In this document: positions 11,581 to 49,233 of the stretch, piece by piece
How positions within the stretch are numbered: the stretch's first letter is position 1
Layout: every line of letters starts with the position of its first letter
IMG/VR virus record: IMGVR_UViG_3300049001_000044
Location: 124,001-188,000 of that record
Direction: 5' to 3' (one strand)
DNA length: 64,000 nucleotides
The notes under the pieces: generated by a model
Seen by the model: the letters and a program-made list of their open reading frames with translations, nothing else
The model's database searches: none
Told to the model about the DNA's origin: nothing
Made by a program: the position numbers and the translations under genes

Positions 11581-11607
11581 AAAAAGAAAGGAGTCCGAAG
11601 ACTCCTT
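11581..11607 (-). terminator. cUUCGg intrinsic terminator
   Basis: AAAGGAGTC-TTCG-GACTCCTTT followed by CTTTT on the minus strand. Confidence 0.8.
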
Positions 11608-11613
11608 TTGGAT

Positions 11614-11772
11614 TCAAAACCCGTCGTCAATCAGCCACCATCCCTCTTCGAAATGGTTGTAAGCTTCGCTACCAACTTCGTACGGGCAATCCTCTAGAGG
11701 AAGAGGATGGTGGTCAATACCTTCATTGAACCACCTAAGCTGGTCTTCGCTCAGATCACTGAGCCAGCCCAT
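11614..11772 (-). CDS. Small acidic protein with CPY...EGW motif (52 aa)
   Basis: MGWLSDLSEDQLRWFNEGID...DCPYEVGSEAYNHFEEGWW; TAATG overlap with glutaredoxin; not in track. Confidence 0.6.
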   Translation of the reverse strand: MGWLSDLSEDQLRWFNEGIDHHPLPLEDCPYEVGSEAYNHFEEGWWLIDDGF

Positions 11773-25329: not shown

Positions 25330-25534
25330 CTGGCATCGCGTTCATTCTCGTCGCCAGCATGTGAGCATATTGTAACGCTTGTTCGTGGCAAGCAAAATCT
25401 CCGTTCACGACTAACGCTACGTCGTGAGCAAAGTCATGTGATTGAAGGACGACCAGTGGACCTTCTAGTCTGCGCCAGACGTCCACCTGCCACGGTCCTT
25501 GATCGTCTTCTACGTCCTCATGGTGATCACACAT
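25292..25534 (-). CDS. Hypothetical protein (80 aa)
   Basis: ORF track; TAATG overlap with the kinase gene. Confidence 0.55.
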   Translation of the reverse strand: MCDHHEDVEDDQGPWQVDVWRRLEGPLVVLQSHDFAHDVALVVNGDFACHEQALQYAHMLATRMNAMPGVRPFDWRKRRD

Positions 25535-26217
25535 TACTTCTTCTCCTTGTTCTGCTGGTCGTTGACGTACTTATTCCACTTCATCAGGGCAAGCGTCATG
25601 ATGCCAGGCAGATACTCGGCGTCAGGGACGGTGTTGATAACGCGAACTTCATCACACTCACTACCCAACAGGGCGGCTTCTTGGCGGAAGTACTGAGTGG
25701 TCAGCGCGCTGAATGGGATACTCTTGTCAGCGCGAGTAGCTTGGCGATCGTTGAGGATGCGCAGAGGAGTTTGGAACTCTGCTGCTACGATGTGGAAGCC
25801 GAACTGACCAGCAGTTCGGGCGTTCCTCAGATCGTTTACCCAACGAGTGCGCGATTTGCGGGTGACGTTCGTATTGTCCACGATCACCACGTCGTTGTTA
25901 TCACGGACTTGCAGCCACGAGGTAGTAACGAAATTGGAGAAGTCAGCACCCGCCTCATTGCAGAAGTCGAACGCCTTGCGGTAAAAGTCCACCGCTTCTT
26001 CGCGGCCAGTCGGGAAGTCGAACTTCATGTAGCGGAGATCGGGACCTCCGCACATCACACCATGTTCAGTGGCATGGAAGGCGTAGTAGGCAAGACGGCA
26101 GGTGTCCAACGAAAACACACCAACGTCTTGACCCGCATGATCAACCTTCAGCTGTTCGATGAAGGAGGATTTGCCGGAGCCCGAAGGGCCGATCAACAGG
26201 TAGGCTACTTTATTCAT
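25534..26217 (-). CDS. P-loop kinase (AAA_33 / polynucleotide kinase-like)
   Basis: LIGPSGSGKSS, VIVDNTNVTRKSR, RQATRADKSIP. Confidence 0.82.
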   Translation of the reverse strand: MNKVAYLLIGPSGSGKSSFIEQLKVDHAGQDVGVFSLDTCRLAYYAFHATEHGVMCGGPDLRYMKFDFPTGREEAVDFYRKAFDFCNEAGADFSNFVTTSWLQVRDNNDVVIVDNTNVTRKSRTRWVNDLRNARTAGQFGFHIVAAEFQTPLRILNDRQATRADKSIPFSALTTQYFRQEAALLGSECDEVRVINTVPDAEYLPGIMTLALMKWNKYVNDQQNKEKK

Positions 26218-26473
26218 TGTCTTTCCTATCTACGTTACCACGCACGCCTTGGTTCCAAAGTTCGCGCGTATTCACACCCACACCGCTTACGCTCTCATCG
26301 CAGTCTTCGCAGCCAACCATTGAGAACATTGCTTCGCCGAAACCCCTAGCGTTGCCGCCGCATTTGGTGCACTTGTTGTAGCCGATGATGGCGCACGAAT
26401 CACAAAGCCAGAACTTGTCATAGCCTTGGACAGTGCCGCCATGTTCTTCGCAGAACTTACCAGACTTTCTCAT
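26210..26473 (-). CDS. Cys-rich zinc-finger protein (87 aa)
   Basis: CEEH, CDSC, CTKC, CEDC; start moved to 26473 (ATGA overlap). Confidence 0.65.
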   Translation of the reverse strand: MRKSGKFCEEHGGTVQGYDKFWLCDSCAIIGYNKCTKCGGNARGFGEAMFSMVGCEDCDESVSGVGVNTRELWNQGVRGNVDRKDNE

Positions 26474-27096
26474 TGCCATTCGACCAGCTCCCATTCCTTC
26501 ATCCACTCGTCGACACGAGCCAACTTCTCTGCTTGATCATCACTGACTCGACCGTGTTGATCGCTCAACAGCAAGTCCAACCAGGCACGATGGCCAACTT
26601 CACCCAGGCGTTGCATGAGGGCGGTCTTCAGAGCACGACGCTTGTCCTTGTTCTTCAGATCGAAGGGGACGTGATACTCGATCATCATCGCGATATTCGA
26701 GACATCTTGCAACGTGAAGCCCAGCAGCTCCTTCACCAACTCCATGTTCTGAGTTGCGTAGTCCACCCAGACACGAGCCGAAATCTGCTCATGACCATGG
26801 TAGGCACGATAGTTACCGCGTGCTTCGGAATACTTCTGGATTTCAGAAGGCGGTTTGCCCACGTCATGGAAGGTGTTTGCGACCAAGGTCAGCAGGCGTT
26901 GGCGATCCGAACGGTGGATGGCCAGATTTTCCATGTACCAGCGATTCAGCATTTTGGTGTGGACAGCGACGTTCGCTTCACGATGCCATGGCGAGTTCTC
27001 AACCGTGGCCTTCATGTTGGCCCACAGATCCGTCTCCTTGAACTTCGAGAAGAAGGATTCGAACCTTCGAACTGCCTCAGTGTAGGGTTGTGTCAT
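26470..27096 (-). CDS. HD-domain phosphohydrolase (CCA-enzyme / HD-Pnk-type HD)
   Basis: PWHRE..V..HT, FHDVGKP, YHGHEQISA, IEYH, SDQHGR. Confidence 0.85.
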   Translation of the reverse strand: MTQPYTEAVRRFESFFSKFKETDLWANMKATVENSPWHREANVAVHTKMLNRWYMENLAIHRSDRQRLLTLVANTFHDVGKPPSEIQKYSEARGNYRAYHGHEQISARVWVDYATQNMELVKELLGFTLQDVSNIAMMIEYHVPFDLKNKDKRRALKTALMQRLGEVGHRAWLDLLLSDQHGRVSDDQAEKLARVDEWMKEWELVEWQ

Positions 27097-28642: not shown

Positions 28643-28666
28643 TTCCTAAAAGAAATTAGAAATGAT

Positions 28667-28697
28667 ATTGTAGCGCACCAGAGGTGCTCAGAAAACT
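28667..28697 (-). promoter_or_regulatory. Phage promoter AGTTT-N20-TACAAT overlapped by the repeat element
   Basis: Exact spacing; the spacer contains GAGGTGCTCAGA (28681-28692). Confidence 0.72.
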
Positions 28698-28755
28698 TCG
28701 ACCTGATGAATGTGTATGTTTATGTGATTGTCGTACGGAGGTCTCTGAGCACCTC
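28681..28755. repeat. Dispersed intergenic element copy 2
   Basis: GAGGTGCTCAGA 28681-28692 / TCTGAGCACCTC 28744-28755, 51-nt spacer. Confidence 0.85.
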
Positions 28756-28827
28756 AGGAGGGCCCAGAAGATGCGCAGGAGCCTATCTCACTAGGCTCCT
28801 GTAAGAGGATCCAACAGTTGATACAGG

Positions 28828-28947
28828 TCAATCAGTAAGGAAGTGACCTTTCCGTGGTTTAGTAGGAGGCGGACACTTTCCTCGTAGCCAGTCAAGCAGC
28901 CATAGAAGTCCACCAAATACACAGAGGAAGCCGACAAAAAATTCCAT
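28828..28947 (-). CDS. Small membrane peptide (39 aa)
   Basis: MEFFVGFLCVFGGLLWLLDWLRGK...; not in track. Confidence 0.45.
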   Translation of the reverse strand: MEFFVGFLCVFGGLLWLLDWLRGKCPPPTKPRKGHFLTD

Positions 28948-28948
28948 G

Positions 28949-29053
28949 TCAGTCCTTTGCAGGTGCAGGTGGAGTTGGCAGCCACATCAGCGTCAGCAGG
29001 GCAAGGGGGCCAAACATCACGAGCATGAGGGGCATAGGATCGTAGTACTTCAT
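28949..29053 (-). CDS. Small membrane peptide (34 aa)
   Basis: MKYYDPMPLMLVMFGPLALLTLMWLP...; GGAGG RBS; not in track. Confidence 0.5.
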   Translation of the reverse strand: MKYYDPMPLMLVMFGPLALLTLMWLPTPPAPAKD

Positions 29054-29065
29054 GATTTCCTCCAT

Positions 29066-29362
29066 TCACGGATAATATTTCGAGACAATCGTCTCGATTA
29101 CTGCAGCGAGTATAAACAGCGAGATGCCCACCACTAACAGTGCGTTGGCTATCCTTGGCTTGGGCTTTGATGGCAACCACAGGAGCAACGCGATGAGTAG
29201 AAAATCGAGGTGGTGGAGGAAGCGAAAACCCCAGCCACCAACGTACTGAAAATGCCACTTAGTCTGCAACCCCCATTGCAGTAAGCCATTCAGGTAGTCG
29301 AGACTAGCGATGATGCTAAGAGCACCGCCTAGCACCGCCGCCAAATTGAGTAGCCTCCTCAT
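29066..29362 (-). CDS. Three-TM membrane protein, candidate immunity protein
   Basis: Hydrophobic 98 aa; ATGA-coupled to the hydrolase gene. Confidence 0.65.
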   Translation of the reverse strand: MRRLLNLAAVLGGALSIIASLDYLNGLLQWGLQTKWHFQYVGGWGFRFLHHLDFLLIALLLWLPSKPKPRIANALLVVGISLFILAAVIETIVSKYYP

Positions 29363-30048
29363 CGCAGCCCCTGCTCGTACAGGTACTTGGCGAGCTCCCT
29401 TCGCCGCTGGCGTCCGAGTCGAGTGTTCGGTCTGTAGTAGAAGTGGCCGAAGCCGGCAATGTCTTGCGACAGCTTGTTCTCGTCTTCGAGCTGGCCTTTA
29501 GAGAGCCAGAGCTTCCACAGGGGCATACCCGCATAAATCGGATCGCCATGATGCGTTAGGTTGAGGACGATGACGCGCCGTATGTTGCCGTTGTTCTGCA
29601 ACTTCCCTAGGAAGTCTTTGCTGATCGGAGAAGCGATCAGCACCAGGTGGTCCACGATGTGGTGAAAACGGGAGTACGCCATCGCTGTATGCGCAGCCAT
29701 CAACGAGCCATAGGAGTAGCCGATCAGGTTAAATTGGTCCGCATCCACCTGCTCCAACCCTTCAATCATCCACGTTTTCTCGTTGCCAGCGGTGTTGAGG
29801 CGCAAGTCTAAGGCAGAGCGAATGGCATCCCGTATCTGACCTTGCGTGCGTTTGCCGACCCACACATGCTTGATGCCAGCTTCCTGTAACGATGCAACCT
29901 GATCGGCGATGTACGAGCCGTTCAACCCGGCACCGCCCCAGTACACGGTACCACGCGGCCTTCCAACTTTGATCTTGATTGGTGTCTTGTCTGACTTGGG
30001 CGTAAGCTCAGCCTTTACGACCACGGGTTCAAACAGAGGGGTGGCCAT
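29359..30048 (-). CDS. Alpha/beta hydrolase (lipase-like, GxSxG)
   Basis: NLIGYSYGS nucleophile elbow, VLIASP, GDPIY, GFGHFYY. Confidence 0.8.
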   Translation of the reverse strand: MATPLFEPVVVKAELTPKSDKTPIKIKVGRPRGTVYWGGAGLNGSYIADQVASLQEAGIKHVWVGKRTQGQIRDAIRSALDLRLNTAGNEKTWMIEGLEQVDADQFNLIGYSYGSLMAAHTAMAYSRFHHIVDHLVLIASPISKDFLGKLQNNGNIRRVIVLNLTHHGDPIYAGMPLWKLWLSKGQLEDENKLSQDIAGFGHFYYRPNTRLGRQRRRELAKYLYEQGLR

Positions 30049-30049
30049 G

Positions 30050-30565
30050 TTAGGCCCCTTCCGGCATGATGGTGATCTTGATATTGGCCGGATCGCTCAT
30101 CTCGATCCTCTCCGTCTTGCCTTCGCCGTCAGTCCTGCCCTCGATGACCCTGCCTTCGCACTCGATGCTGTACCCACGATGCATGAGTATGTCGCCTGTT
30201 GCTTCGTCATGGAGAACGAATTGCTGATCGAAACCCTCGTTCGTCTTGCCTACCCACTGGCCGTTCTCCTCCACGAAGCGGATCGGTACTTCCTCGCCTG
30301 ATGTATTGGTTACACCGTCCTTGTCGTTCAGCGTAGAGATGAGCGGGCAACCACAGCTCGTCTTCATACCGTGCAGAACTTTGGCAACGCCGTTCACCTT
30401 CGAACGCTCGTATCCCTCTGCGATAACGCAGCCTTTCGAGCAGGATATCTTCGCGCCAACCACGGCGACTGGCCTACCCATACTCTTTACAAACTCGACG
30501 CCTTCCAGTACAGTTGCGCCACAAGCGGCGAAATCATCCTTACGAATCCAACCAATGATACGCAT
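30050..30565 (-). CDS. PAAR-domain protein with C-terminal extension
   Basis: DFAACGATVLEG, GRPVAVVGAKISC, GVAKVLHGMKTSCGCPLI, then FDQQFVL...IEGRTDGEGKT. Confidence 0.88.
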   Translation of the reverse strand: MRIIGWIRKDDFAACGATVLEGVEFVKSMGRPVAVVGAKISCSKGCVIAEGYERSKVNGVAKVLHGMKTSCGCPLISTLNDKDGVTNTSGEEVPIRFVEENGQWVGKTNEGFDQQFVLHDEATGDILMHRGYSIECEGRVIEGRTDGEGKTERIEMSDPANIKITIMPEGA

Positions 30566-30636
30566 GGATCGTTTCCTTTCAATTTGACTTCGATCAAAAC
30601 CTCGGTTATTGTTGAGGTTAGTTCAATAATATCTCA

Positions 30637-30714
30637 GAGGTGACCCAAGGCGTTGCTAATGATCATATAGTACGCACAATACGGAGGTCTCTGAGCACCT
30701 CTGGTAAGCCCAGA
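30637..30714. repeat. Dispersed intergenic element copy 3 (left arm degenerate)
   Basis: TACGGAGGTCTCTGAGCACCTC 30680-30701 identical to 28734-28755; 30689-30708 is the reverse complement of 7870-7889. Confidence 0.85.
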
Positions 30715-30718
30715 ATGC

Positions 30719-30748
30719 AATAGAGGACACCATCGAAGGTCCTCTATT
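30719..30748. terminator. Hairpin, probable terminator
   Basis: 10-bp inverted repeat AATAGAGGAC / GTCCTCTATT. Confidence 0.55.
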
Positions 30749-31086
30749 AGAACATCTTTTCTACCAGATGTTCGCCCATTGCGTAGATGATATGGGCCAT
30801 TGCACGACCGTCCACCATTTGGCAATGATCCAGCACTGCAATGGCCAGAACTACTGACACGATGGGGAGGATAAATCCGCGCACGATCAATAAGCCTTGT
30901 GGGATACTTGGGCTTTGGCTTGGACCGAGATTCCTTGCGTGTACAACACAATGCCAAATGCGAGGAAGGACAACAAGATTATTCGGTTCATGTTCATGTT
31001 CACCTCCGAGATTTAGAATAATTTGATTGTATTACTCCTAGGAAATTTGGTGTTGACACCCATCAAACACGGAACTTGCGAACGAA

Positions 31087-31112
31087 AAAGGACTTCCCTA
31101 GGAAAGTCCTTT
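31087..31112 (-). terminator. Intrinsic terminator
   Basis: AAAGGACTT / AAGTCCTTT arms, U-run on minus strand. Confidence 0.65.
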
Positions 31113-31122
31113 GCTCGAGGGG

Positions 31123-31845
31123 TTACTTCTTGGCTTTTTCCTGTTGAGCCCAGTACTCCCGCAGGAGTTTGAGATTCCACTCGTACTTGATGGGGTAGCC
31201 CTCCTTCTTGACCTCGCCGTCATTCCACTTTGGGGGTTTTCCCATCGTCATCCCCACCTTCAGGTTATTCGACAGGCAATCCGCAAAGGGAGACTTCGGG
31301 CCGACCCACGTCTTGGCGAGCTTGCCTTTCTTGTTGACCCTGCCCAGCCACAAGATGACGTCGTCGATCCCCTTGAGTTGGGCGCGGTAGCAGGGCTCGA
31401 CCGCCTTGGAGTAGAGTTTTGTCAGATGCTCCTCATAGTCCGCAGCACCCATAAGCGGCATAGGTCCCACTCGCGCCATGTACTCCCAATGGTTGGGTTC
31501 ATTGGGGTCGATCTTACGTGGGTGCAAGTCCTGGTCGCGGCGCTCGGGCCTGTCGATGATGGCACTTTGACACTCCATCTTCTTCATGAGAACGCCCTTG
31601 TAGCAGTACGTTGCCTTCTCACGATTGTTCGTCAGCTCCATGTACGTGGTCAAACTGTCGGGCTGTTTGTTCGTGCACACATAGGGTGTGCCCTTGCAGA
31701 CGACGGAAAACATCTCGCTATTGGCATCCTCCTGGGCCGCCTGTTGAAACACCTGGGGCGGAATTTGGCGGGCTTTGACGACACTGACGAGAGACGGCTG
31801 CGCTTGGGCGACGCCGACCACGAAGAGCAATGCGAGGGCTTTCAT
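31123..31845 (-). CDS. Exported Cys-containing protein (240 aa)
   Basis: Signal peptide MKALALLFVVGVAQA; GGAG RBS. Confidence 0.75.
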   Translation of the reverse strand: MKALALLFVVGVAQAQPSLVSVVKARQIPPQVFQQAAQEDANSEMFSVVCKGTPYVCTNKQPDSLTTYMELTNNREKATYCYKGVLMKKMECQSAIIDRPERRDQDLHPRKIDPNEPNHWEYMARVGPMPLMGAADYEEHLTKLYSKAVEPCYRAQLKGIDDVILWLGRVNKKGKLAKTWVGPKSPFADCLSNNLKVGMTMGKPPKWNDGEVKKEGYPIKYEWNLKLLREYWAQQEKAKK

Positions 31846-31921
31846 GACGTTCTCCTTGAAGTAAGAGGTGCTGTTTTTATTTTACTTCAAAGAAACCTTT
31901 GCGCATTGACGAGAAACAAAA

Positions 31922-31943
31922 GGGGCCCCCAGGTGGGGGCCCC
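31922..31943 (-). terminator. Intrinsic terminator
   Basis: GGGGCCCCC / GGGGGCCCC stem then TTTTG on minus strand. Confidence 0.65.
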
Positions 31944-31956
31944 ACATCAAATCAAA

Positions 31957-32256
31957 CTACTGCACCACACCATCTTTAAAGGTCGTATTGTTACCTACGC
32001 GTACCCAAATACCCTTGTTCAAGTCGAGCAGCTCAATGCGACGTTTGTCAGATCGAATAGGCGCGACACTGGAGCCAAGGTTTTTAGTCCACATATTTTT
32101 GGCAACGGACCCGAAACAATTCCTACACGCTATCTCTGCGTTTTCGCATTTGGTGCTCATCCTTATGACACCATTCTGTTTTGGACCCTTGCGATAATTG
32201 TCGCCTTCGTCGCCCCATACGACAGCCCAATAAAATTGGCTCATGTTTTTCCCCAA
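31957..32256 (-). CDS. Hypothetical protein (about 99 aa)
   Basis: ORF track; bounded by terminators. Confidence 0.6.
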   Translation of the reverse strand: MGKNMSQFYWAVVWGDEGDNYRKGPKQNGVIRMSTKCENAEIACRNCFGSVAKNMWTKNLGSSVAPIRSDKRRIELLDLNKGIWVRVGNNTTFKDGVVQ

Positions 32257-32260
32257 AAAG

Positions 32261-32284
32261 GGGCCTCCCTTTTACAGGAGGCCC
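32261..32284 (-). terminator. Intrinsic terminator
   Basis: GGGCCTCC / GGAGGCCC stem then CTTTTT on minus strand. Confidence 0.6.
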
Positions 32285-32312
32285 AAGGCACGAACAACTA
32301 GGGGAGGTGGGA

Positions 32313-32711
32313 TTATCTGCCGCCGTTCCCGCTTGCGGAGTGGCCGGCGCGGCGTGCTCCGCCCGGATCGCCAGGGCGAAGTTCTTCATTCCCCTTCAAG
32401 CGACTGTCAGATTCGGGGTGGTTGACCTGGCCACGGCCGTCAGTCGCGCGAGGTCCGTTCCTCCGGACGTTTGCATTGTAGCGGACGTTGCGGCCAAAGA
32501 AGCGCGAGAGCTGGTCGATATCGGAAGGATTCAGCGTGCGCTCCTGGATGCCATCGCCGGTAACTTTGACGACTTCCTGCCCCTGGAAGTCGCCTTCACC
32601 CTGCATGGTCTCGTAGGTGACTTCGCCCACGCTGATTTTGCGGCTCACATGTTGCTCGACGATCACTGCCGGTTGCTGTTGACCCTGATCCTTGTCTTTC
32701 TGAGTTGCCAT
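32313..32711 (-). CDS. Hypothetical protein with disordered Arg/Gly-rich tail (132 aa)
   Basis: ORF track; AGGAG RBS. Confidence 0.7.
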   Translation of the reverse strand: MATQKDKDQGQQQPAVIVEQHVSRKISVGEVTYETMQGEGDFQGQEVVKVTGDGIQERTLNPSDIDQLSRFFGRNVRYNANVRRNGPRATDGRGQVNHPESDSRLKGNEELRPGDPGGARRAGHSASGNGGR

Positions 32712-33710: not shown

Positions 33711-33728
33711 AAGGGCCCGAAGGCCCTT
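33711..33728 (-). terminator. cUUCGg intrinsic terminator
   Basis: AAGGGCC-TTCG-GGCCCTT then TGTTTCTT. Confidence 0.7.
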
Positions 33729-33748
33729 ATAATAGAAGTTGTTTGGGA

Positions 33749-34087
33749 TTATTTCCGCTTGCTGTGTCTTCGGGCGGATTCTTCGAGGAGGGGAGTAACT
33801 GCATATCGGTTTTCGAAGTCGCGAGGGTTTCGTTTGTAGGTCGTGTTGACCTCGCCTGTACCCATGGTGAACACGCAAACCGCATGGACGATGTGGGGAG
33901 AATCCTTTTCAAAAATTTCAGCTCTGACGGCATATCCCTTCTTGGGATCATACACGTGTTGATTCGCGAGATAACCACTGGCCCTTTCGGCGGCTGGGTT
34001 AGGATGAATACAAGGTACCTTCTTGATGACCTCAAGTCTTTCATTCATGTACGCGATGACGATGTTCCGTTCTTTCCGCTCTACCAT
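33749..34087 (-). CDS. Hypothetical protein (112 aa)
   Basis: Start moved to MVERKERN at 34087 (GGAAGG RBS). Confidence 0.65.
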   Translation of the reverse strand: MVERKERNIVIAYMNERLEVIKKVPCIHPNPAAERASGYLANQHVYDPKKGYAVRAEIFEKDSPHIVHAVCVFTMGTGEVNTTYKRNPRDFENRYAVTPLLEESARRHSKRK

Positions 34088-38372: not shown

Positions 38373-38984
38373 TTACTTCAAGCTCTTGATAAAGGGCTCT
38401 ACCTGATCCATGAAGGTACTTTCGTTTTTGTTGAAGATGTAGAACTTTTCGCACTTGATCATGATTTCGCTGTTCGATTTCAAGCACTCTTGGAAGTGAT
38501 CGTTGTGGAACCATGCAGCGTTGTTCATGTCCTGCATTACCAGCGTGATGGCCTTCTCTGTGGCCACATCATAGTCCTGTTCACCATCGCGATTTCTTAC
38601 AACGTCGCGGTGCATCTCCATGTTGCCGGTCAGATCATGGAAGTCCGGGCTGCACAACCATTCAAACTTACCGATCGGAAAAACCACCCCTAGCTGATCA
38701 CCATAAAGTAGAGCGTTGTTGGCGCTGCCAGAAGTGAAGAGACCGTTGCGGAATGGGAACCCAAATTCCTTCTTGAAGAATTCATTGGCGCGATCATGAA
38801 GATCAGTTGGACTGTCACGAGGGCCAGTGCGCTCACGGAACGGGATGATGGCATGGTCAGGTACGTGCTGCGCTGCATGGTGAAGATACCTATCTCCCTT
38901 CAGAGAGAAGTAGTAGGCGCAGTCCTTCTTGAACTGTTCTAAGTTAAGCGGCGCGGACTCTTGGAGGTATTGCTTGAATCTCAT
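38373..38984 (-). CDS. ART-like protein, subfamily B (first Arg motif degenerate)
   Basis: MRFKQYLQE leader; PRDS...FTSGSANNALLYG...FP.G.F...SEIMI. Confidence 0.6.
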   Translation of the reverse strand: MRFKQYLQESAPLNLEQFKKDCAYYFSLKGDRYLHHAAQHVPDHAIIPFRERTGPRDSPTDLHDRANEFFKKEFGFPFRNGLFTSGSANNALLYGDQLGVVFPIGKFEWLCSPDFHDLTGNMEMHRDVVRNRDGEQDYDVATEKAITLVMQDMNNAAWFHNDHFQECLKSNSEIMIKCEKFYIFNKNESTFMDQVEPFIKSLK

Positions 38985-39700
38985 TTGTACCACCCATCGA
39001 TCTTGTGCTTGATAACGTCCGCATCCATTACATCGGAAAGGTACTTCGATTTCTGGCTGCGAATTTTTTCTGCCATGCGCTTGCCAATCGGGTTAGCGAT
39101 TGGAGCGTCGTAGAAATTGGTCATCGATGCGAACGCCTTTCTAAGCACCGCATCGGTTAGCTCACCCTCGTCATTCTTGATCTCGGCGAAGAATGAGCTG
39201 AATTCCTGCTTAAAGAATTCCTTGTTCTCCGCTGACCGCTTGTAGACTTGCTGAATGAATTCGGGATCCACATCGCGCTCTTGACGAGTTGCTGCGCGCT
39301 TAAGCGCCGTTTCAAGTGGTGTGTCAACGAACACCATGCCTACGTCATAGCCCAGCGACTTCAAAATACCAGCACGCTGAAGGATGTTTTCTGCACTGTT
39401 CGATGTACCATCAATAAGCAGTGGCAGCATACCATTCAGATAGTTGCCCAACATGCCTTTCGTGATGCGATGGGTCTGATCTTGGAATGCAATCCAGTTC
39501 ATGCTGTTGACGCGACGACCAGTCTTGAGTGTGAGGTACTCGGTGGCGATGTCGGTGTTGATGACGCGAGGTTGGATCGCACCACTGATTTTCTTCCCAG
39601 TGTACGACTTACCAGAGCCCGGAATGCCGACGACGAAGACAGCTTTGAAAATTCCGCGATCTTCGATTGATTCTGAAATGAACTCTTTGAATGAAACCAT
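38981..39700 (-). CDS. P-loop kinase (zeta-toxin / AAA_33-like) with head-targeting-like leader
   Basis: MVSFKEFISE; VGIPGSGKS, LLIDGT, ALKRAATRQER. Confidence 0.8.
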   Translation of the reverse strand: MVSFKEFISESIEDRGIFKAVFVVGIPGSGKSYTGKKISGAIQPRVINTDIATEYLTLKTGRRVNSMNWIAFQDQTHRITKGMLGNYLNGMLPLLIDGTSNSAENILQRAGILKSLGYDVGMVFVDTPLETALKRAATRQERDVDPEFIQQVYKRSAENKEFFKQEFSSFFAEIKNDEGELTDAVLRKAFASMTNFYDAPIANPIGKRMAEKIRSQKSKYLSDVMDADVIKHKIDGWYK

Positions 39701-39733
39701 GATGTTCTTTTATGATTGGGATACAGGCTCTAT

Positions 39734-41059
39734 TTACTTCATGTGAGACTGAATGTACTCAAGAGCGTCGTCAGTTAGTTCACCCATATTCAGCGAAGGC
39801 CACCGATGGAAGAAGTCTACGAACGCATTCTCAACCTTCCTGTGAACTGCATGGCCGCCCTGTCGAAGAGCATGAACAACGCCCGCAAATAGACGTGCAT
39901 CGATCGCAACACATGGACCGCTGAACCAACACTCAACATTCGTTGGTAGCTTCCGTCCGAACTCAACCATCTTTAAGTTCAGGGTGTCAGGGTGGAACAT
40001 AACAGCGGCAAGAGCTTGAAGTCCCCTTCCCTTATTCTTGCTGAGGATGTCCATCAATTCTTTCTTCGGCGTTTCTTCAAATGCATCGCACCATCTTTCA
40101 GCGAAATCGTCGGTGTTGCTGTCGATGAAGTCGTTGATAGCACTGACGCTGGCCATAGTCATTTGTTTCCCATCGCCAAGTTCCAGCCCGATATCCTCTA
40201 AGAGGTGCTCGAACTCGTCAGAGAACAAATCGACATCAATACCATCAGACCAAGACGTGACGATATCGTTGTGAATGAAGTCATCCACATTACTCACCAC
40301 CACTTTGGTGCCATCGAATGGAACGATGACCATCGGCATACCATAGCTCGCCGCTTCAGCAATGTTAGAAGAGCAGATAAGTGACTTGCTTCGCGATGGA
40401 AAATCCTTCATGCTATCAGAAATGTCCATCATCAACTGGTAGATGTTGTTCGTATCTCTTGAGGTGCGCTCGCCCTGCGATGCGTCGATCGTCATAACTG
40501 CGACGTCATGCTTGAATCCGCGGAAGAGCAGACCACCAGTCGAAATTGCTTGAAGGCCGCGTGAGCAGTGCTTGTTGAGAAGGTCAACAGCTTTCTTCAC
40601 ATCGACATACTCGACGGCCCATGGCTTGACGACCGCCTCAGTGATTGGCTTTGGCTCGCGCTCCATGATGTCGCCTGTGATCTTCTTGAAGCCATTGCGT
40701 TGGTACCATGCCTTGAGCTGTGTCTTGGTTAGATTCTTCCCCTCCCTTCCGCCTGCGTTCTTAAGCGGCTTAACAGTGAGGTCCATCTTCACCTGATGCT
40801 TGTCAGCCAGGTCGGTCAGCCACTTCATGAACTCACGAGCGTTGCCTTGGTTCTTCTCAATCGACATGATGCTACTGATGTGGATCATGCCTTGCCACTT
40901 GCTAATCTCCGCCATCATTTTGTCCTGCCAGATGGCCATACGTGGACTCCAAGGATGCGGGGTCGTTTGTTCATGATACTCTTTCATGAACGCATCGAGG
41001 CCTGGGTTCGCCTTCAAACTTATGCGAACTACCTCTGATAGGAACTGTTTGAATCTCAT
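39734..41059 (-). CDS. GNAT acetyltransferase fused to an ART-like domain
   Basis: QGNAREFM...LKAWYQRNGF (GNAT); LFRG...FPSRSKSLICSS...A..YG...VECWFSG. Confidence 0.7.
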   Translation of the reverse strand: MRFKQFLSEVVRISLKANPGLDAFMKEYHEQTTPHPWSPRMAIWQDKMMAEISKWQGMIHISSIMSIEKNQGNAREFMKWLTDLADKHQVKMDLTVKPLKNAGGREGKNLTKTQLKAWYQRNGFKKITGDIMEREPKPITEAVVKPWAVEYVDVKKAVDLLNKHCSRGLQAISTGGLLFRGFKHDVAVMTIDASQGERTSRDTNNIYQLMMDISDSMKDFPSRSKSLICSSNIAEAASYGMPMVIVPFDGTKVVVSNVDDFIHNDIVTSWSDGIDVDLFSDEFEHLLEDIGLELGDGKQMTMASVSAINDFIDSNTDDFAERWCDAFEETPKKELMDILSKNKGRGLQALAAVMFHPDTLNLKMVEFGRKLPTNVECWFSGPCVAIDARLFAGVVHALRQGGHAVHRKVENAFVDFFHRWPSLNMGELTDDALEYIQSHMK

Positions 41060-41529
41060 TTGATCTCTTTCGTCTGCGAGTCGATGGTGATCATCTTCAA
41101 GATGTCGTTACGGTCGGCGACGACGATGTTGTTGGTCGTCTTACCACCATTCGCGTAAGGAATGAACTGGTTAACCTTCTTTCTTTCCACCTTGATCTTC
41201 GCCTTCGAGGTAGCAGCGGCGAGTGCGATGTTTAGATAGGTAGCAGCGACCTCAGCGTTACGTGCGGCGTAGCGAGGCTCGATAATCTCGGTGTAGGCGA
41301 TCTGATTCTGGAAAGTGCTAATTGCGGAGTTGTACACCTCGTCAATCTTCTTCTCAGTCTCAATGTCATCCGCGTCCTTCACGTCTGGCTGCGGCTCAGT
41401 AGGTTGAACGTTGCTAGGTTGGGTGACATCAGTCATTCCATACTCTTGCTCAATATCGAACTCAACACCGCTCGTTGGGTTGAATGAACCTTCTTCGATG
41501 TTGAAGACGTCTTCTAGTGGGTGTTTCAT
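41056..41529 (-). CDS. Probable terminase small subunit (gp16-like)
   Basis: Helical core, EVAATYL, C-terminal TTNNIVVADRNDILKMI. Confidence 0.55.
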   Translation of the reverse strand: MKHPLEDVFNIEEGSFNPTSGVEFDIEQEYGMTDVTQPSNVQPTEPQPDVKDADDIETEKKIDEVYNSAISTFQNQIAYTEIIEPRYAARNAEVAATYLNIALAAATSKAKIKVERKKVNQFIPYANGGKTTNNIVVADRNDILKMITIDSQTKEIK

Positions 41530-41540
41530 TTTCTGCTCTC

Positions 41541-42797
41541 TTATTCAAATGGCCATGGGCCCGGTTTTTCGCCGGTTTTTCTCTGTGCTTGGAACTTGGC
41601 GATCTTTTTCTTGATCATTTCCTTGGTGTTCCACAGATCGAAATTTCCTGCTGCGTATCTTGCGAACAGCGCCATGATCTTTTCAAAGGTCTCGTCGCCA
41701 CGTTTGTTGGACATAACCAACTTGTAGTACTTCTTTCGATACTCTTCAACCTCAGCCTTGTTGTCGATGGCCAATGCATATGCTTGCGCGCATCTAGATA
41801 CGGCGTTGATGACCTTGTCTTCCATGGACAGATAGTCACTACCAACGGATCTAAACTCGACGTGACTGCGCTTTAGATTGACTGAGACGTATTTACCCAG
41901 ATCGCGTCTTGATTGTAGCTGGTCAGCGGCGATTCGAGTCACGCCATTACGCATCAACCTCAGTTGCTTCTCAACGAACTCTGGATCGCGGCTAAGTGCG
42001 TCCTTCATGTTCCGGTACATTGACTCGCAGTACCTATTCGTCTCACGACCAAATTCAGCAAGTAGGTGTTCGTCACCCAGGAACAGCACCAGCTTTACCA
42101 TGTCAAGTTTGTTATGACCTTCGCCACTCACGTTAATGTGGAGCCCGCATGACGCGTTCGTCTCTGCGCCATTCTCTTTTAACCACGCGAAGACGTTCTT
42201 CAGAGCAGTTAATCCTTCGCTGATTGAGCTGTAAACAGGGCTAACCATCTCAATGCCAAAGTTGGCCTTTATGCTGTCGTCAGGTTCAAACGTCCACTTG
42301 GTCGATACCTTCGTCGCTTCGTTGTGCTCACCGAAAACAGTTGGCTCTTCTACGTTTAGGTCTTTTGCGAACTTAGCCGCAATCGCTTTAGCAGTGTTGA
42401 TGAACTCAAGGTAGGGGTCATCTGACGCTTCATCGTAACCGTGGGGCAGATCGTACCCGTAAACCTCAGCAAAGTCAGAGAATGAGAAGATGGATTTGCT
42501 GGTCATGTAGGATAAGAAGGTGGTACTAATCTGACCGCGGCTTCCCGCAAGGGATTTCCATCTTTGATAGTCATCATCTAACTTATCGAAGGCGTCATCG
42601 GACATGCTGAAGAAGTTAGCGATGACGTTTGGTGTAATGTCGTAATCAAAGCGCACACCCTTTTTACCAGTGAGTTTCTCAACGTCATCGAAGAATACTT
42701 CCAGTTCGAATCCCACTTGTAGAGGAGATGATGATGCGAAGCTCTTGAGCGCGCTAGGGCTCATCCTAACCTCGTTAAGATAATCTTTGAATTTCAT
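41541..42797 (-). CDS. Putative amidoligase (COOH-NH2 ligase type 2) with head-targeting-like leader
   Basis: GFELE, PDDSI, GIEMVSP, TNASCGLHINVS, KYVSVN, VEFR. Confidence 0.83.
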   Translation of the reverse strand: MKFKDYLNEVRMSPSALKSFASSSPLQVGFELEVFFDDVEKLTGKKGVRFDYDITPNVIANFFSMSDDAFDKLDDDYQRWKSLAGSRGQISTTFLSYMTSKSIFSFSDFAEVYGYDLPHGYDEASDDPYLEFINTAKAIAAKFAKDLNVEEPTVFGEHNEATKVSTKWTFEPDDSIKANFGIEMVSPVYSSISEGLTALKNVFAWLKENGAETNASCGLHINVSGEGHNKLDMVKLVLFLGDEHLLAEFGRETNRYCESMYRNMKDALSRDPEFVEKQLRLMRNGVTRIAADQLQSRRDLGKYVSVNLKRSHVEFRSVGSDYLSMEDKVINAVSRCAQAYALAIDNKAEVEEYRKKYYKLVMSNKRGDETFEKIMALFARYAAGNFDLWNTKEMIKKKIAKFQAQRKTGEKPGPWPFE

Positions 42798-43321
42798 TTC
42801 TTCGCGCCTCTTGTAGTACCGGTAGTCTTTCTAGTACCTGCTGGTTTTTTCGCCTGTTTCGCCTGTTTCTTTGGACCCTGCTTGAAGAGGGACTGTTCAG
42901 TGATGACGCGGAACTTCATGCCGTTCTGACGACAGAAGACCTCAGCGGCTTTCCACTTGGCGATATTTACTGCCAGCGCCATCTTGTCACGATCGCTCTT
43001 TGCCTTTTCAGCCAGCGTCTCTTTCAACGGCTTGACTTCCAACACTTCTTTCTGAATGTTGCCGTCCTTATCCTGATAGACCACGACGAAGTCAGGGAAG
43101 TATCTGGCCGGTTTGAAGCCTGGACGTCCAGTCACAGGGTCAATGACCGGTTTGAGATAAGGAATGACAAGCTCTTCACTACCCCACTTGATGACAGCCT
43201 GTGAACTATCCAGGAACTTCATCATAGCAATTTCCCACGATGAACGGAACATGATGTTCGTTGCATCACCTGCGTATTTCTGCGGATTCTTTGGAACGAA
43301 TCTTCCTTGTGCGAAACCCAT
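42794..43321 (-). CDS. Head completion nuclease (T4 gp4-like)
   Basis: GRFVPKNPQKY, RSSWE, WGSEELVIPY, YFPDF, EVKP. Confidence 0.9.
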   Translation of the reverse strand: MGFAQGRFVPKNPQKYAGDATNIMFRSSWEIAMMKFLDSSQAVIKWGSEELVIPYLKPVIDPVTGRPGFKPARYFPDFVVVYQDKDGNIQKEVLEVKPLKETLAEKAKSDRDKMALAVNIAKWKAAEVFCRQNGMKFRVITEQSLFKQGPKKQAKQAKKPAGTRKTTGTTRGAKK

Positions 43322-44484
43322 TATGCGTATTCTCCATCGTCGCTAGACTCTTGACTTGCCAGCGATTCGACCACGCTTGGTGAGGTGGTGTTGTCAGCTA
43401 AGAAGTTCGTCGATGGTCGAGCGAATGATTGATTTGTTTTTCCTAGTGGATTGACTTTGTTTCCAACCACTGTGTCCTGTACAGAAGATGCACCACCGTC
43501 TGAGATGGTAGTGAAGTTAGGAGTCGCGTAGTCGCGGTACCCCTGATTCAGTGCGCTACCATTTGCGCCACCTTGTGCAGAGCTCCCACCATTACCGTCC
43601 ATCGGAATATCGCCGCCCATAAACAGTGGACCGCCTGTCTCAGTGGTGAAGGCGTTGACGTGATCCATGAAGACAGAGTCGAAGTCAACTGACATCGTGA
43701 TGATGTTGAAGTTGCCGCCGTTCTCATGGTCCATATCGTCGATATCGATGTTGGTGAACTTTGGGTTCATGAAGATGAAGTTCACAACCTTCACCCACGC
43801 CGAAGGAGTCTTTACGTCGCTGTTCCTCTCAACGAAGATTTGGTGGACGGTCATTTCTTCCAAGATGTTCTTCGCATCATTTGGGAGTGGTCCACGCCAT
43901 GCGGTGTTGTTGTCGCTGCCATAATCGAAGCCATAGTCTTCATGCGTCATCGAAGGCATGAACTGTCTGCGAGAGATCGGTTGAATGAGCTGACGGTACA
44001 TGTTGACGAAGCCCAATCCATTATTGCCAACGTCGTCGAAGAATGTCAAGCTAACTTCTCGGTTGCGGATGGACTTCAACACCTTAGTGCGGAAGTTGTA
44101 GAGGTTTACTTCCTCATAGTCGAAGTCGTGTTTAGGACGATCAACGTGGCGAACGATGAAAGTGAGATTCTCTTGGAGCTGCTTCACCGGATAACCCATC
44201 GACTCGGCGTAGGCGATGATAGCTGGGTTGAACTTGAAGCTCACCTTGAACATGAACTTCAGCTTAGGATTGAATGCTACGTTGTTCTTGATCAGATCAT
44301 GAGCGTAGTCAGACGAAATCCATTCCGAAGGAGCGCCTTCTGATTGTGATGCGGTGGATGCTTTGGAGGTCGAGCCAAAAGACATCTTCTTGTCTTGCCC
44401 GCTAACAGCGGCGCCGAATTTGTCAAGCGCGTTCTTCTCCAAATTGACACCCGATGGGATCATTTTTGAAATATCTTTTGGCAC
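43321..44484 (-). CDS. Tail-tube-like baseplate protein (gp48/gp54-like)
   Basis: VDRPK...VNLYNFR...VSLTFFDD tube-fold pattern; late promoter; beside tail tube gene. Confidence 0.55.
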   Translation of the reverse strand: MPKDISKMIPSGVNLEKNALDKFGAAVSGQDKKMSFGSTSKASTASQSEGAPSEWISSDYAHDLIKNNVAFNPKLKFMFKVSFKFNPAIIAYAESMGYPVKQLQENLTFIVRHVDRPKHDFDYEEVNLYNFRTKVLKSIRNREVSLTFFDDVGNNGLGFVNMYRQLIQPISRRQFMPSMTHEDYGFDYGSDNNTAWRGPLPNDAKNILEEMTVHQIFVERNSDVKTPSAWVKVVNFIFMNPKFTNIDIDDMDHENGGNFNIITMSVDFDSVFMDHVNAFTTETGGPLFMGGDIPMDGNGGSSAQGGANGSALNQGYRDYATPNFTTISDGGASSVQDTVVGNKVNPLGKTNQSFARPSTNFLADNTTSPSVVESLASQESSDDGEYA

Positions 44485-44511
44485 GATTATTGTCCAGGTG
44501 GTTGTACGGTT

Positions 44512-44519
44512 TATTTATG
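44512..44519 (-). promoter_or_regulatory. Late promoter motif CATAAATA
   Basis: Directly after a UUCG terminator. Confidence 0.65.
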
Positions 44520-44535
44520 AAGCCGGACGGCGCGC

Positions 44536-44561
44536 AAAAGAAAGGGAGCCCGAAGGCTCCC
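44536..44561 (-). terminator. cUUCGg intrinsic terminator
   Basis: GGGAGCC-TTCG-GGCTCCC then TTTCTTTT. Confidence 0.8.
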
Positions 44562-44579
44562 ACGTTCAGCTAGCTTGTA

Positions 44580-44837
44580 TTAAGCTGCTTCGTCGGTCTT
44601 TGGTGCGTCTTCAGCTGGAGCTGGAGTTTCGACAGGCGCTTCCACCTTCTCTTCAACTACGGGCTCAACTACTGCTTCGACTTCCTTAACGACTTCTTCT
44701 ACCTTTTCGACAACTTCGTCGACGACGTGCTTCACTTCTTCAGCGACGTGTTGAACAGCGTGAGCTGCCTCCACGACGAAGTCAAGCTTGACGCCTGGCA
44801 GAGAGGCTAACATGCGGAGGTAATCTGCTTGCTTCAT
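44580..44837 (-). CDS. Acidic low-complexity protein (85 aa)
   Basis: V/E-rich VVxEV repeats; follows the tail tube gene by 1 nt. Confidence 0.65.
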   Translation of the reverse strand: MKQADYLRMLASLPGVKLDFVVEAAHAVQHVAEEVKHVVDEVVEKVEEVVKEVEAVVEPVVEEKVEAPVETPAPAEDAPKTDEAA

Positions 44838-44838
44838 A

Positions 44839-45429
44839 TTACAGGTTACCGTTCAGTGCAGTGCCGTATCCAGCACCCATCAGTTCTTGACGTGCGTGGT
44901 CGTAGCGGATGGAAAGGGTGATAGTTGCTGCGTCAGAAGCCGAGTAGTCCAGATCACCGTAGTCCGCAGACACGATGAAGCAGCCTTCAAGACGCCATTC
45001 TTCAACAACACCTTCGTTACCGTCCAGCTGTTGCAGGATAGTACCGAATTTGTAATCAGAACCAGTAGCACCAGCATTCAGCCAGTCGCCTGGAAGATCG
45101 CCACCGATCAGGCGCTGCTGAGTTTCAAGTTGACCTTGAACTGCAGCCGAGGCCAGACCAGTAATGTCGTCTTCGAGGGTCAGAGAGACTGGATCCCAAG
45201 TGTGCTTACCAGCAATGTACGCCACCGAGTTGTAGCGGTGGATTGGAACTTCTTCAAACGAAAGATTCGGGCGAGTGATAGTCGTGGCCTGACGAGTCAG
45301 TTCACGCGAGCTCGCCGATGGAACGAGGCGTGCGAGACCAACGAAGGTCACCTGCCAGCGGTGCTTTTGCTTTGGATGCAGGATACCAAATCCCGCTCCA
45401 GGAATACCCATCTGCGATAGAGTAGCCAT
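44839..45429 (-). CDS. Tail tube protein (gp19-like)
   Basis: RPNLSFEEV...IAGKHTWDPVSLTLED...WRLEGCF...DLDYS...ITLSIRYD. Confidence 0.88.
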   Translation of the reverse strand: MATLSQMGIPGAGFGILHPKQKHRWQVTFVGLARLVPSASSRELTRQATTITRPNLSFEEVPIHRYNSVAYIAGKHTWDPVSLTLEDDITGLASAAVQGQLETQQRLIGGDLPGDWLNAGATGSDYKFGTILQQLDGNEGVVEEWRLEGCFIVSADYGDLDYSASDAATITLSIRYDHARQELMGAGYGTALNGNL

Positions 45430-45486
45430 GTTTTCTCCTTAGTACTAACTAAAAGTGGTGTCAGGTCACCGGTTGTCTACGAGACT

Positions 45487-45494
45487 TATTTATT
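45487..45494 (-). promoter_or_regulatory. Late promoter motif AATAAATA
   Basis: Upstream of tail tube gene. Confidence 0.65.
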
Positions 45495-45531
45495 CAACCC
45501 CGCAGTTTACCGGTGCCGGTTCTTGTGTTAC

Positions 45532-46392
45532 CTAAATCTCATCTGCGCTCTTGATCTGTTTCATCAACCAATCATAGCGCTCTTGACGGTTGAAGTGCGT
45601 ACCTTTCAACCCAGCCTTTTCCATCTCTTCCTGCACCATTGAATATGGGACCATGTAGTATCCGTCAGTGCGATAGAAGAGGATCTCATGACCGCTCTTC
45701 ACAGCTGCTTCCAAGTCTTCATTGTCTAGGTAGAGGGTGTCAAAGGCGTTGTGGAGAGATTGGACCAATTTGCCATAGGCGTTCTTTACCTGAGACCACA
45801 TTGCTGCGGGTGGTTGGTTGGAGATCGTCTGTAGCGTCATATCCTCACCCGCGTCATTACGATTTGCAACCCATGTTGCGGGTGTCATCTCATACGAGAT
45901 GTCTTGGAAAAGTTGACCTATGCTCCCTGCATCGGGCTTTGGAGCGTCATTCATCCTTTTAAACTCTGCCCCGATCTGTTGCATGATCTGTCCTTCTTCA
46001 TCATAGGAGTCAGTGATGTCCGTTGACCATCCATATTTGAAGTCGCCTACTGGGAAAAAGAATCCTAACTCTCCATACTCTGATGTCATGGCGGCGTTGC
46101 CTGACGCGAACACAGTTCTAGTACGCACAGATGGGACCTTGCGGGCAAGCTGATATCCTGCGTTGAAGACAAAGTTGAATGCCTTGCCAGAGTCACGAGG
46201 TGGTCGCTCAGTGGGATGAGGGGTGAACCCTGCTCTCATGTACCGTGCAGACACTCCACGAAAAATTGGAGCAGTGGGGTTGGCGTGCAAGTAGGGCTTG
46301 CATCGATACTTGATGTCCTCGCACACTTGTCGGAAGTTCAGTCCAAGTGCTGGACGATCGTCTTGTTCTAAGATGAAGTCTTTGAATCTCAT
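45532..46392 (-). CDS. ART-like protein, subfamily B
   Basis: MRFKDFILE; IFRG...PRDS...VFASG...YG...FPVGDF...HEIL. Confidence 0.65.
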   Translation of the reverse strand: MRFKDFILEQDDRPALGLNFRQVCEDIKYRCKPYLHANPTAPIFRGVSARYMRAGFTPHPTERPPRDSGKAFNFVFNAGYQLARKVPSVRTRTVFASGNAAMTSEYGELGFFFPVGDFKYGWSTDITDSYDEEGQIMQQIGAEFKRMNDAPKPDAGSIGQLFQDISYEMTPATWVANRNDAGEDMTLQTISNQPPAAMWSQVKNAYGKLVQSLHNAFDTLYLDNEDLEAAVKSGHEILFYRTDGYYMVPYSMVQEEMEKAGLKGTHFNRQERYDWLMKQIKSADEI

Positions 46393-47168: not shown

Positions 47169-47189
47169 TATGTGCTCCATGCGATGGGG

Positions 47190-47197
47190 TATTTATG
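47190..47197 (-). promoter_or_regulatory. Late promoter motif CATAAATA
   Basis: Drives the subfamily-B pair; after a UUCG terminator. Confidence 0.65.
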
Positions 47198-47217
47198 TGA
47201 TCGCCCGGGCGCCGCGC

Positions 47218-47245
47218 AAAAGAAAGGAGCCCGAAGGCTCCTTTC
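47218..47245 (-). terminator. cUUCGg terminator after the sheath gene
   Basis: GAAAGGAGCC-TTCG-GGCTCCTTTC then TTTT. Confidence 0.8.
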
Positions 47246-47261
47246 AGCTTCAAAACTTTGA

Positions 47262-49121: not shown

Positions 49122-49182
49122 GTTATTCTCCTTGTCTTAAATTTTGCCGGTTCTATCATGTCACGCCGGCTGATGACCTACC

Positions 49183-49190: not shown

Positions 49191-49233
49191 AGATGGTCGG
49201 GTTCCAGTTGCAGAAAAATCAAAGTTTGGACAC

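Follow-up and report, generated by a model that had tools for sequence, protein, structure and literature searches.

A candidate type VI secretion cargo operon lies between copies of a near-palindromic intergenic element in a jumbo myovirus

Clusters of type VI secretion system (T6SS) toxin genes that include small PAAR genes have been documented in Ralstonia prophages (PMC11481896). These clusters, defined around vgrG and the Tle1/3/4/5 lipases, are carried at the prophage edge by temperate phages of 30-42 kb and combine a small PAAR gene with a hydrolase toxin gene and a further small gene downstream. Tle lipases have transthyretin-like (TTR) domains as their known or predicted docking sites (PMC7376260); in enteroaggregative Escherichia coli, a TTR beta-sandwich at the spike end of VgrG1 recruits the hydrolase cargo Tle1 (PDB 6SKI/6SJL). 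The PAAR cone is also the fold of myovirus spike tips (T4 gp5.4, phiKZ gp163.1 and P1), which are proteins of ~90-100 amino acids (aa) that lack an extension, are encoded together with baseplate genes and are produced late, and jumbo myoviruses have been reported with standalone PAAR proteins only (PMC7824862). In T4-type phages, accessory open reading frames (ORFs) in hyperplastic regions lie beside promoter-early stem-loop cassettes (PeSLs), repeated composite intergenic motifs that consist of a sigma-70 consensus promoter and a stem-loop and that hold the boundaries of indels between related phages (PMC2839356, PMC4122927); PeSLs also form mini-circles on excision. Here we describe an operon encoding a PAAR-TTR protein, a hydrolase and a small membrane protein (the cassette), which lies between two copies of a near-palindromic intergenic element in a 64,000-nucleotide stretch of DNA (the window) from the 343,229-bp IMG/VR contig IMGVR_UViG_3300049001_000044.

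The locus is best explained as a self-contained accessory unit of a jumbo myovirus, in which a T6SS-type cargo module that makes use of the host T6SS lies between recombining regulatory elements; we give this explanation a probability of about 0.68. The carrier was classed as a jumbo myovirus because the contig is 343 kb in size and has a sheath, tube, large terminase (TerL) and ribonucleotide reductase (RNR) gene set; the window encodes RNR, a UvsW-like helicase, TerL, two tube proteins, a sheath protein and a sheath stabiliser. From its fold and genomic context, the PAAR-TTR protein is predicted to sit at the tip of a VgrG-type spike, with the alpha/beta-hydrolase bound to its TTR domain; the gene neighbourhood suggests that the small membrane protein would neutralise the hydrolase inside the cell that makes it. 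The element most likely serves as regulatory punctuation, that is, as a terminator followed by a promoter or operator. The arms, being identical over 22-36 nt, also make the element a source of portable homology, and recombination between two copies would excise or insert the intervening unit, a model proposed earlier for the PeSLs of T4-type phages. During infection, expression of the operon probably coincides with that of early or middle accessory genes, and its product probably uses the host T6SS and stays out of virions.

The layout given in a preliminary description of this locus was confirmed. An exact 22-mer is present at 28734-28755 and at 30680-30701 (0 expected, from 100 shuffles), and the five ORFs between the two copies have the coordinates given there, all on the minus strand. 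The genes are tightly coupled: the PAAR and hydrolase genes are 1 nt apart, the hydrolase and membrane-protein genes overlap by 4 nt, and the first micro-ORF follows with a gap of 0 nt and the second with a gap of 1 nt. The operon was said to lie far from the tail genes, and the nearest of these is 12.8 kb away. With a G+C (GC) content of 54.3%, compared to 50.3±1.5%, the cassette is the richest stretch of its size in the window (99.8th percentile). The features of the locus are as follows, where L050 is a related contig that carries one element and no cassette.

30720-30747, minus strand: terminator-like hairpin (from sequence and folding) at the end of the upstream small-ORF unit; the upstream element has its left boundary here, and L050 has a homologous hairpin to the left of its single element.
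30680-30715, minus strand: arm 1 of the upstream element (repeat family D7), which holds the 22-mer at 30680-30701 and extends to GCCCAGAA.
30633-30679, minus strand: variable spacer and degenerate arm 2 (CTCAGAGGTGAC, 30633-30644), then a TATTAT -10-like box; putative promoter and 5' untranslated region (UTR) of the PAAR operon.
30050-30565, minus strand: PAAR-TTR protein, 171 aa (Pfam, structure model, Foldseek).
29359-30048, minus strand: alpha/beta-hydrolase, 229 aa, effector candidate (invariant triad, structure model).
29066-29362, minus strand: membrane protein, 98 aa, candidate immunity protein (4-nt overlap with the hydrolase stop, conserved neighbourhood).
28949-29065 and 28828-28947, minus strand: micro-ORFs of 38 and 39 aa, coupled, with Shine-Dalgarno-like sites and one transmembrane segment each.
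28777-28800, minus strand: terminator-like hairpin at the end of the PAAR operon (sequence, folding).
28734-28769, minus strand: arm 1 of the downstream element, which holds the 22-mer at 28734-28755.
28643-28733, minus strand: spacer, arm 2 (28677-28696), TACAAT -10-like box (28667-28672) and 5'UTR of an HD-phosphohydrolase gene; near-identical in L050.
28756-30701: 1,946-bp segment, comprising the PAAR operon and one element copy, that is missing from L050 (blastn and junction alignments).
7862-7965, minus strand: third element copy in the window, with both arms well kept.

The first gene of the operon encodes a member of the PAAR_motif family (PF05488; E=5e-15, 55.9 bits against a Pfam cut-off of 27). 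In the structure model, which had a predicted local distance difference test (pLDDT) score of 89, an N-terminal PAAR cone (~residues 1-80) precedes a C-terminal transthyretin-like domain (~residues 105-166). Foldseek matched the cone to 4jiw/4jiv (TM-score 0.64-0.71, probability 1.00) and also to the phage spike tips of P1, phiKZ (gp163.1) and T4 (gp5.4). The best match of the C-terminal sandwich was 6ski_A, the VgrG TTR domain bound to Tle1 (TM-score 0.79, root-mean-square deviation 2.1 Å, 56 columns); other TTR folds were matched as well, and the protein falls into the class of PAAR and VgrG proteins with a TTR adaptor. Compared to the E. coli complex, the TTR domain here is on PAAR instead of VgrG, docking is predicted from the fold, and the candidate cargo, a minimal hydrolase of 229 aa, has no relationship to Tle1 (DUF2235). 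The protein has the cone fold in common with myovirus spike tips; it differs from these, and from the standalone ~95-aa gp5.4-like baseplate PAAR class, in its length of 171 aa, its TTR extension, its candidate effector/immunity pair, its position in an accessory region away from the tail genes and its lack of an upstream ATAAATA late-type motif. In the T6SS cluster of Burkholderia contaminans (L043, 9626-10000), a 124-aa protein encoded upstream of the hydrolase has no PAAR domain and the same TTR-like C-terminal end. Because this protein keeps the TTR domain without PAAR, the TTR domain is the part that travels with the hydrolase.

The second gene product had been described as a lipase-like GYSYG hydrolase and compared with the Tle effectors; a lipase or Tle identity was not established. 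The motif (GYSYG) and a catalytic triad are present, with Ser112, Asp169 and His202 invariant in 29 homologs, and the structure model (pLDDT 82) has an alpha/beta-hydrolase fold; membership of the Tle1-Tle5 families was not supported. The Pfam match to Abhydrolase_1 was barely above cut-off and centred on the nucleophile elbow, and the PHROG matches, to esterase/lipase and endolysin families, were weak. The hydrolase matched no Tle domain (DUF2235, lipase_3, DUF3274, Tle4, PLD) in Pfam or NCBIfam, no solved Tle structure was among the Foldseek matches of its model, and neither a PDB sequence-profile search nor NCBIfam gave anything significant for the hydrolase or its membrane partner. The term lipase is a guess, because there is no Tle, NCBIfam or PDB sequence relative; on sequence grounds the protein is an uncharacterised Ser-Asp-His alpha/beta hydrolase and not a Tle1-5 member.

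In every complete module examined, whether from phage, prophage or bacterium, a multi-transmembrane protein of 98-122 aa was encoded directly downstream of the hydrolase, with 22-65% identity across modules. A hydropathy scan gave three transmembrane segments in most of these partner homologs and two above threshold in the 98-aa protein of the window, whose gene has the downstream position and small size seen in T6SS effector-immunity modules. The micro-ORFs that follow it have ribosome-binding sites, are specific to this phage and have no homologs, and the closest copy of the cassette, on contig L033, does not have them. A possible derivation from pieces of a decayed second immunity gene was considered; at 21.6 bits, compared to a shuffled maximum of 21.9, their likeness to the TM2 loop of the partner is within noise. 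On another contig, L044, a 42-aa ORF resembles a truncated N-terminus of the immunity gene.

The proposed T6SS character of the operon was borne out by the TTR adaptor domain, by hydrolase homologs within a Burkholderia core T6SS cluster and by the co-travelling membrane gene. A check of bacterial T6SS neighbourhoods showed that the B. contaminans hydrolase and its transmembrane partner lie between DotU/tssL and hcp/vgrG, inside a T6SS cluster, and are preceded by the TTR-only protein. The search returned 494 hydrolase homologs, and the named organisms were mostly Oxalobacteraceae, with some Burkholderia, Iodobacter and Chitinimonas; among 2.9 million viral contigs, the hydrolase was found only in the parent phage and in four small prophage contigs. 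Orphan trios are present in Massilia and Collimonas chromosomes without lysis genes. In Massilia sp. UMI-21 (L005, 25-10690), a PAAR-hydrolase pair at the end of a small island with integrase, DUF927 primase and capsid genes adjoins tssG and tssF; this island looks like a phage satellite. Another module adjoins an inovirus-type Rep gene and a cyclic-oligonucleotide-based antiphage signalling system (CBASS). The module is also found as a moron in a P22-like prophage (Chitinimonas) and at the end of siphovirus RS138 and similar prophages, and the RS138 module agrees with that of the window in its three genes and their order. The Ralstonia prophage clusters are similar in gene content; unlike those clusters, the operon described here has a jumbo myovirus carrier, no vgrG and a hydrolase of unclassified family.

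In Massilia genomes the trio is GC-poor relative to its surroundings. Since it is GC-rich in the window and GC-poor in Massilia, the module keeps its own GC content of ~51-56%. Comparison with L033, which comes from the same metagenome, gave ratios of nonsynonymous to synonymous substitution (dN/dS) of 0.12 for the PAAR gene and 0.04 for the hydrolase, with dS saturated. Maximum-likelihood analysis placed the phage copy with two metagenomic relatives in a long-branched clade that grouped (96/98) with the Massilia horti and M. solisilvae copies; because the root was placed by midpoint only, no donor is claimed.

An unbiased count of k-mers over 36 intergenic regions of the window gave two motif classes. 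The first, ATAAATA, is a relaxed form of the T4-type late motif and occurs 12 times on the gene-sense strand, with 9/12 sites in the intergenic 10% of the window (P=2e-7). The intergenic sites, on the minus strand at 11553, 16264, 22549, 36887, 44512, 45487, 47190, 49183 and 63521, lie 9-78 nt before start codons, including those of the sheath, both tube genes and TerL, and are likely T4-type late promoters. The full T4 late consensus, TATAAATA, occurs once; the relaxed motif is the informative form. There is no ATAAATA within 28700-30800, the PAAR operon region. The second class consists of sigma-70-like -10 boxes (GTATAAT, TACAAT), which precede RNR and other non-structural genes; TACAAT is located immediately after arm 2 of the element at 28.7 kb and TATTAT after the degenerate arm 2 of the element on the PAAR side. 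We infer a promoter function for these boxes. A shared terminator (AAAGGAGCCCGAAGGCTCC plus a T-run) was also noted in three copies (11582-11620, 44537-44560 and 47218-47256); two of these follow the tube-like and sheath genes, and each of the two is directly upstream of ATAAATA.

These promoter classes bear on the alternative that the cassette arms the phage tail, as the preliminary description had suggested. In that case, the PAAR-TTR protein would sit on the phage's own spike and take the hydrolase into the host envelope, and the membrane protein would block the enzyme of superinfecting siblings, a shielding that would be analogous to that of T4 Spackle against gp5 lysozyme. The phage does have a contractile tail, the matches of the PAAR fold include spike tips of phages in addition to T6SS proteins, and the cassette is under purifying selection in apparently several related phages. 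However, TerL is located at 35.3 kb and the tube and sheath genes at 43.3-49.1 kb in a virion module that spans 35-64 kb; the operon lies outside it, has no late-type motif and is dispensable in L050. The same module is present in siphovirus- and podovirus-type prophages that lack a contractile spike and in a bacterial T6SS cluster, and standalone PAAR proteins are the norm in jumbo myoviruses (PMC7824862). The location, promoter class and dispensability of the operon, together with the occurrence of the module in phages without contractile tails, argue against tail-tip loading, which we regard as unlikely. A combined scheme, in which a T6SS cargo module was turned into an optional spike tip with a Spackle-like shield, and such warheads are swapped among related phages by means of the palindromic elements, is likewise improbable.

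The 22-mer does not mark ends specific to the cassette. It forms one of the two arms of a near-palindromic intergenic element of ~100 bp, which follows a terminator-like hairpin and belongs to a genome-wide family. A third 22-mer copy (7930-7951) matches at 19/22 positions with the 16-nt core exact, and this core is present in at least 11 exact copies on the parent contig. On the gene-sense strand, the element consists of a terminator-like hairpin, at times with a T-run, arm 1 (…CCAGAGGTGCTCAGAGACCTCC), a 39-nt spacer, arm 2, a -10-like box and the gene. Arm 2 is the inverted arm, often extended to CTCTGGTAAGCCC, and a second arm 2 variant, CTCTGGGCCTC, pairs more weakly with an unchanged arm 1. 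The offset between the arms is exactly 57 nt in 5/5 well-paired sites, and the spacers are unrelated in sequence. The elements fold into stems of 14-23 bp (z = -3 to -8), and Rfam gave no match at gathering score anywhere in the window. The strength of these folds prompted the idea of a constraint on the RNA stem alone (RNase III-type), which was set aside as the leading constraint, as arm 2 variants are uncompensated in arm 1 and the arms are conserved across differing GC content. Because variants are uncompensated and the arm sequence is strictly conserved, the arms are probably recognised in a sequence-specific manner.

The genes downstream of elements are all small accessory genes, encoding an HD phosphohydrolase, a DnaJ-domain protein, an HNH-like protein, membrane proteins and ORFans, and no element copy is present in the 35-64 kb virion module. 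Approximately 127 kb of the 343-kb genome was covered; the estimate of element density is biased, because the pieces beyond the window were picked by motif. A 3-kb stretch of L011 holds three elements, which bracket units of one and two genes, and L021 also has copies that bracket units of 1-2 genes. True elements were found in other phage contigs, namely L014/L048 and L020 (39% and 42% GC). The L020 element follows an ortholog of the gene that precedes an element in the parent phage (L012) and has an identical 18-nt core; this shared placement is positional conservation, as would be expected of a fixed regulatory site. The remaining outside matches of the 16-mer scan were rejected as chance matches in coding DNA, and a metagenome scan with the 21-nt arm gave one true match and one chance match. 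Two variants were also observed: in L027, CAGAGACCTC occurs twice in tandem inside arm 1 (1242-1261), a 10-nt duplication that fits a CAGAG unit of one helical turn within the arms, and in L033 (1536-1723) a terminator is followed by CTGGGCTTA, the outer arm part, a canonical extended -10 box (TGGTATAAT) and a different downstream gene.

The closest counterparts of this element are the PeSLs. Both are repeated composite intergenic motifs with a stem-loop that lie beside accessory ORFs in hyperplastic regions, and in both the boundaries of indels between related phages fall in the motif. The two are unrelated in sequence; unlike PeSLs, the element described here has two long inverted arms at a fixed 57-nt offset, a 343-kb jumbo phage carrier and a promoter that is putative. 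A further alternative is that the repeats are the ends or sites of a dedicated site-specific system, similar to miniature inverted-repeat transposable elements (MITEs) or to integron attC sites, and that a recombinase, instead of general homologous recombination, moves the cassette. The inverted arms, which reach ~33 nt, the fixed 57-nt offset, the variable centre and the bracketing of single cassettes fit such a system, and the CAGAG repeats one helical turn apart, together with the L027 duplication, resemble a protein-binding array. Like attC sites, the elements are imperfect palindromes with a variable centre that stand between co-directional single-unit cassettes; unlike them, they have conserved arms, a terminator for each unit and no GTTRRRY-type attC core, and no integrase or transposase was seen in the window. 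MITE or transposon copies would not be expected to have unrelated internal sequences, no target-site duplications were seen flanking the copies, and orthologous elements keep their position in diverged phages. This alternative is considered unlikely, slightly more so than the tail-tip scheme.

The empty-site relative with one repeat, proposed as a check, was found. L050 is a 4.5-kb contig that encodes an HD-phosphohydrolase homolog 87% identical to the gene downstream of the cassette; it is 81% identical to window positions 28769-26225 over 2,555 nt and also has orthologs of the window genes at 33727-34044 and 32313-32711. The trio is thus dispensable and its variation is bounded by the repeat. 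By blastn, L050 1277-1341 aligns to window 30744-30680, and L050 from 1305 onward aligns to 28769 downward, with an overlap on the repeat. On the left side of arm 1, the best match of L050 is to the upstream copy and its hairpin, with a score of 21, whereas the downstream copy scores 6 and shuffled sequences reach at most 3; on the right side, it is identical to the downstream copy at 85/108 positions, compared to 32/113 for the upstream copy. Since the left flank is that of the upstream copy and the right flank that of the downstream copy, the difference between the two sequences is a segment of 1,946 bp, and the crossover falls within the 22-mer. Recombination between two element copies would yield an indel of this form, whether as gain or as loss, and we infer recombination as the mechanism behind it. 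Window positions 30745-32312 (1.5 kb) are also absent from L050; they encode a 99-aa ORF, a 240-aa protein with a signal-peptide-like N-terminus and membrane ORFs of 38 and 47 aa, and the edges of this second indel are terminator-level microhomologies and not the palindromic element. The cassette region is hyperplastic.

The preliminary description had called the cassette captured. Its repeat-bounded nature was confirmed, but a recent capture is doubtful, since a more distant relative, L029, has the cassette downstream of the same gene. In L029, the PAAR gene (69% identity) is directly downstream of an ortholog of the 132-aa gene (46% identity, E=5e-27), and other genes are shared with the parent phage. 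Because the cassette is present in both the window and L029, old residence followed by loss in L050 is favoured; such a loss appears at least as likely as a gain in the window phage, and independent gain at a hotspot may also account for the distribution. A DNA search against deposited phages found no close relative of the parent phage, and the parent contig was the sole match in IMG/VR single-protein searches with both cassette-flanking genes.

Dispensability in L050 and a composition atypical for the window would also fit a neutral passenger, a cassette that hitch-hikes without a role between flanking elements that alone matter. In contrast to this expectation, the three ORFs are intact, dN/dS is 0.04-0.12, the triad is invariant and the cassette is at the same locus in L029, all of which makes a passenger very unlikely. 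Least credible is a lysis or envelope module with the hydrolase as a LysB-like lipid esterase, the three-transmembrane protein as holin-like and the micro-ORFs as spanin-like, which the weak PHROG esterase/lipase and endolysin matches, the holin-like size of a ~100-aa protein with 2-3 transmembrane segments and the two small membrane ORFs after it might suggest, but the trio is always headed by PAAR or a TTR adaptor, is found in a T6SS cluster and, as an orphan, in chromosomes that have no lysis genes, coexists with a separate holin and lysozyme in the Chitinimonas prophage, and encodes a transmembrane protein without a charged holin-type C-terminus.

Several points weigh against the explanation of the locus as a T6SS cargo module between recombining elements. 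The fold neighbours of the hydrolase are generic thioesterases, lipases and cutinases (Foldseek TM-score ≤ 0.45), and its effector role is predicted from fold and gene neighbourhood; the candidate immunity role of the 98-aa protein is drawn from synteny. A host T6SS is an assumption, and any benefit of such a module to a presumably virulent jumbo phage is hypothetical. A sigma-70 and terminator scan of the locus was not above shuffled expectation, and the L027 element is inverted relative to its genes. The empty site comes from one short-read contig, and the exact repeat is 22 nt, so a chimeric join at the repeat may have produced it. The direction of the event is two-sided: high GC content and nesting among Massilia copies suggest import, and the synteny in L029 suggests old residence.

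If the explanation holds, the locus would provide a concrete case of accessory-operon gain or loss in a giant phage, resolved to within a shared repeat, and an element family unrelated in sequence to the T4 PeSLs would suggest that promoter- and terminator-borne modular shuffling is general in large phages. The carriage of T6SS toxin and immunity genes, known in temperate phages, would extend to a jumbo myovirus, raising the question of whether a lytic phage arms the T6SS of its host or its own tail. It would also define an uncharacterised effector/immunity family, consisting of a 229-aa Ser-Asp-His hydrolase, a TTR adaptor and a ~100-aa membrane partner, that is widespread in Oxalobacteraceae, Burkholderia and their phages.

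Other features were noted in the window, where the long ORFs are almost all on the minus strand. Interspersed with the tail and head genes at 38957-58594 are at least nine paralogs (PHROG 12810/11975) that have the N-terminus MRFKD... in common, six of them in tandem at 53435-58589. At 25534-27096, adjoining genes for an HD-domain protein (208 aa) and a P-loop kinase-like protein (227 aa) correspond to the two halves of PHROG 6931; this match is also to polynucleotide kinase, and the pair may be a split RNA-repair-type enzyme. A 154-aa ORF at 61318-61782, ~25 kb from TerL, has a weak match to the N-terminal part of a large terminase (PHROG 5989, E=3.5e-6). Genes for an amidoligase-family protein (41541-42797) and a nucleotide-sugar-epimerase-like protein (60479-61357) are located inside the structural module.

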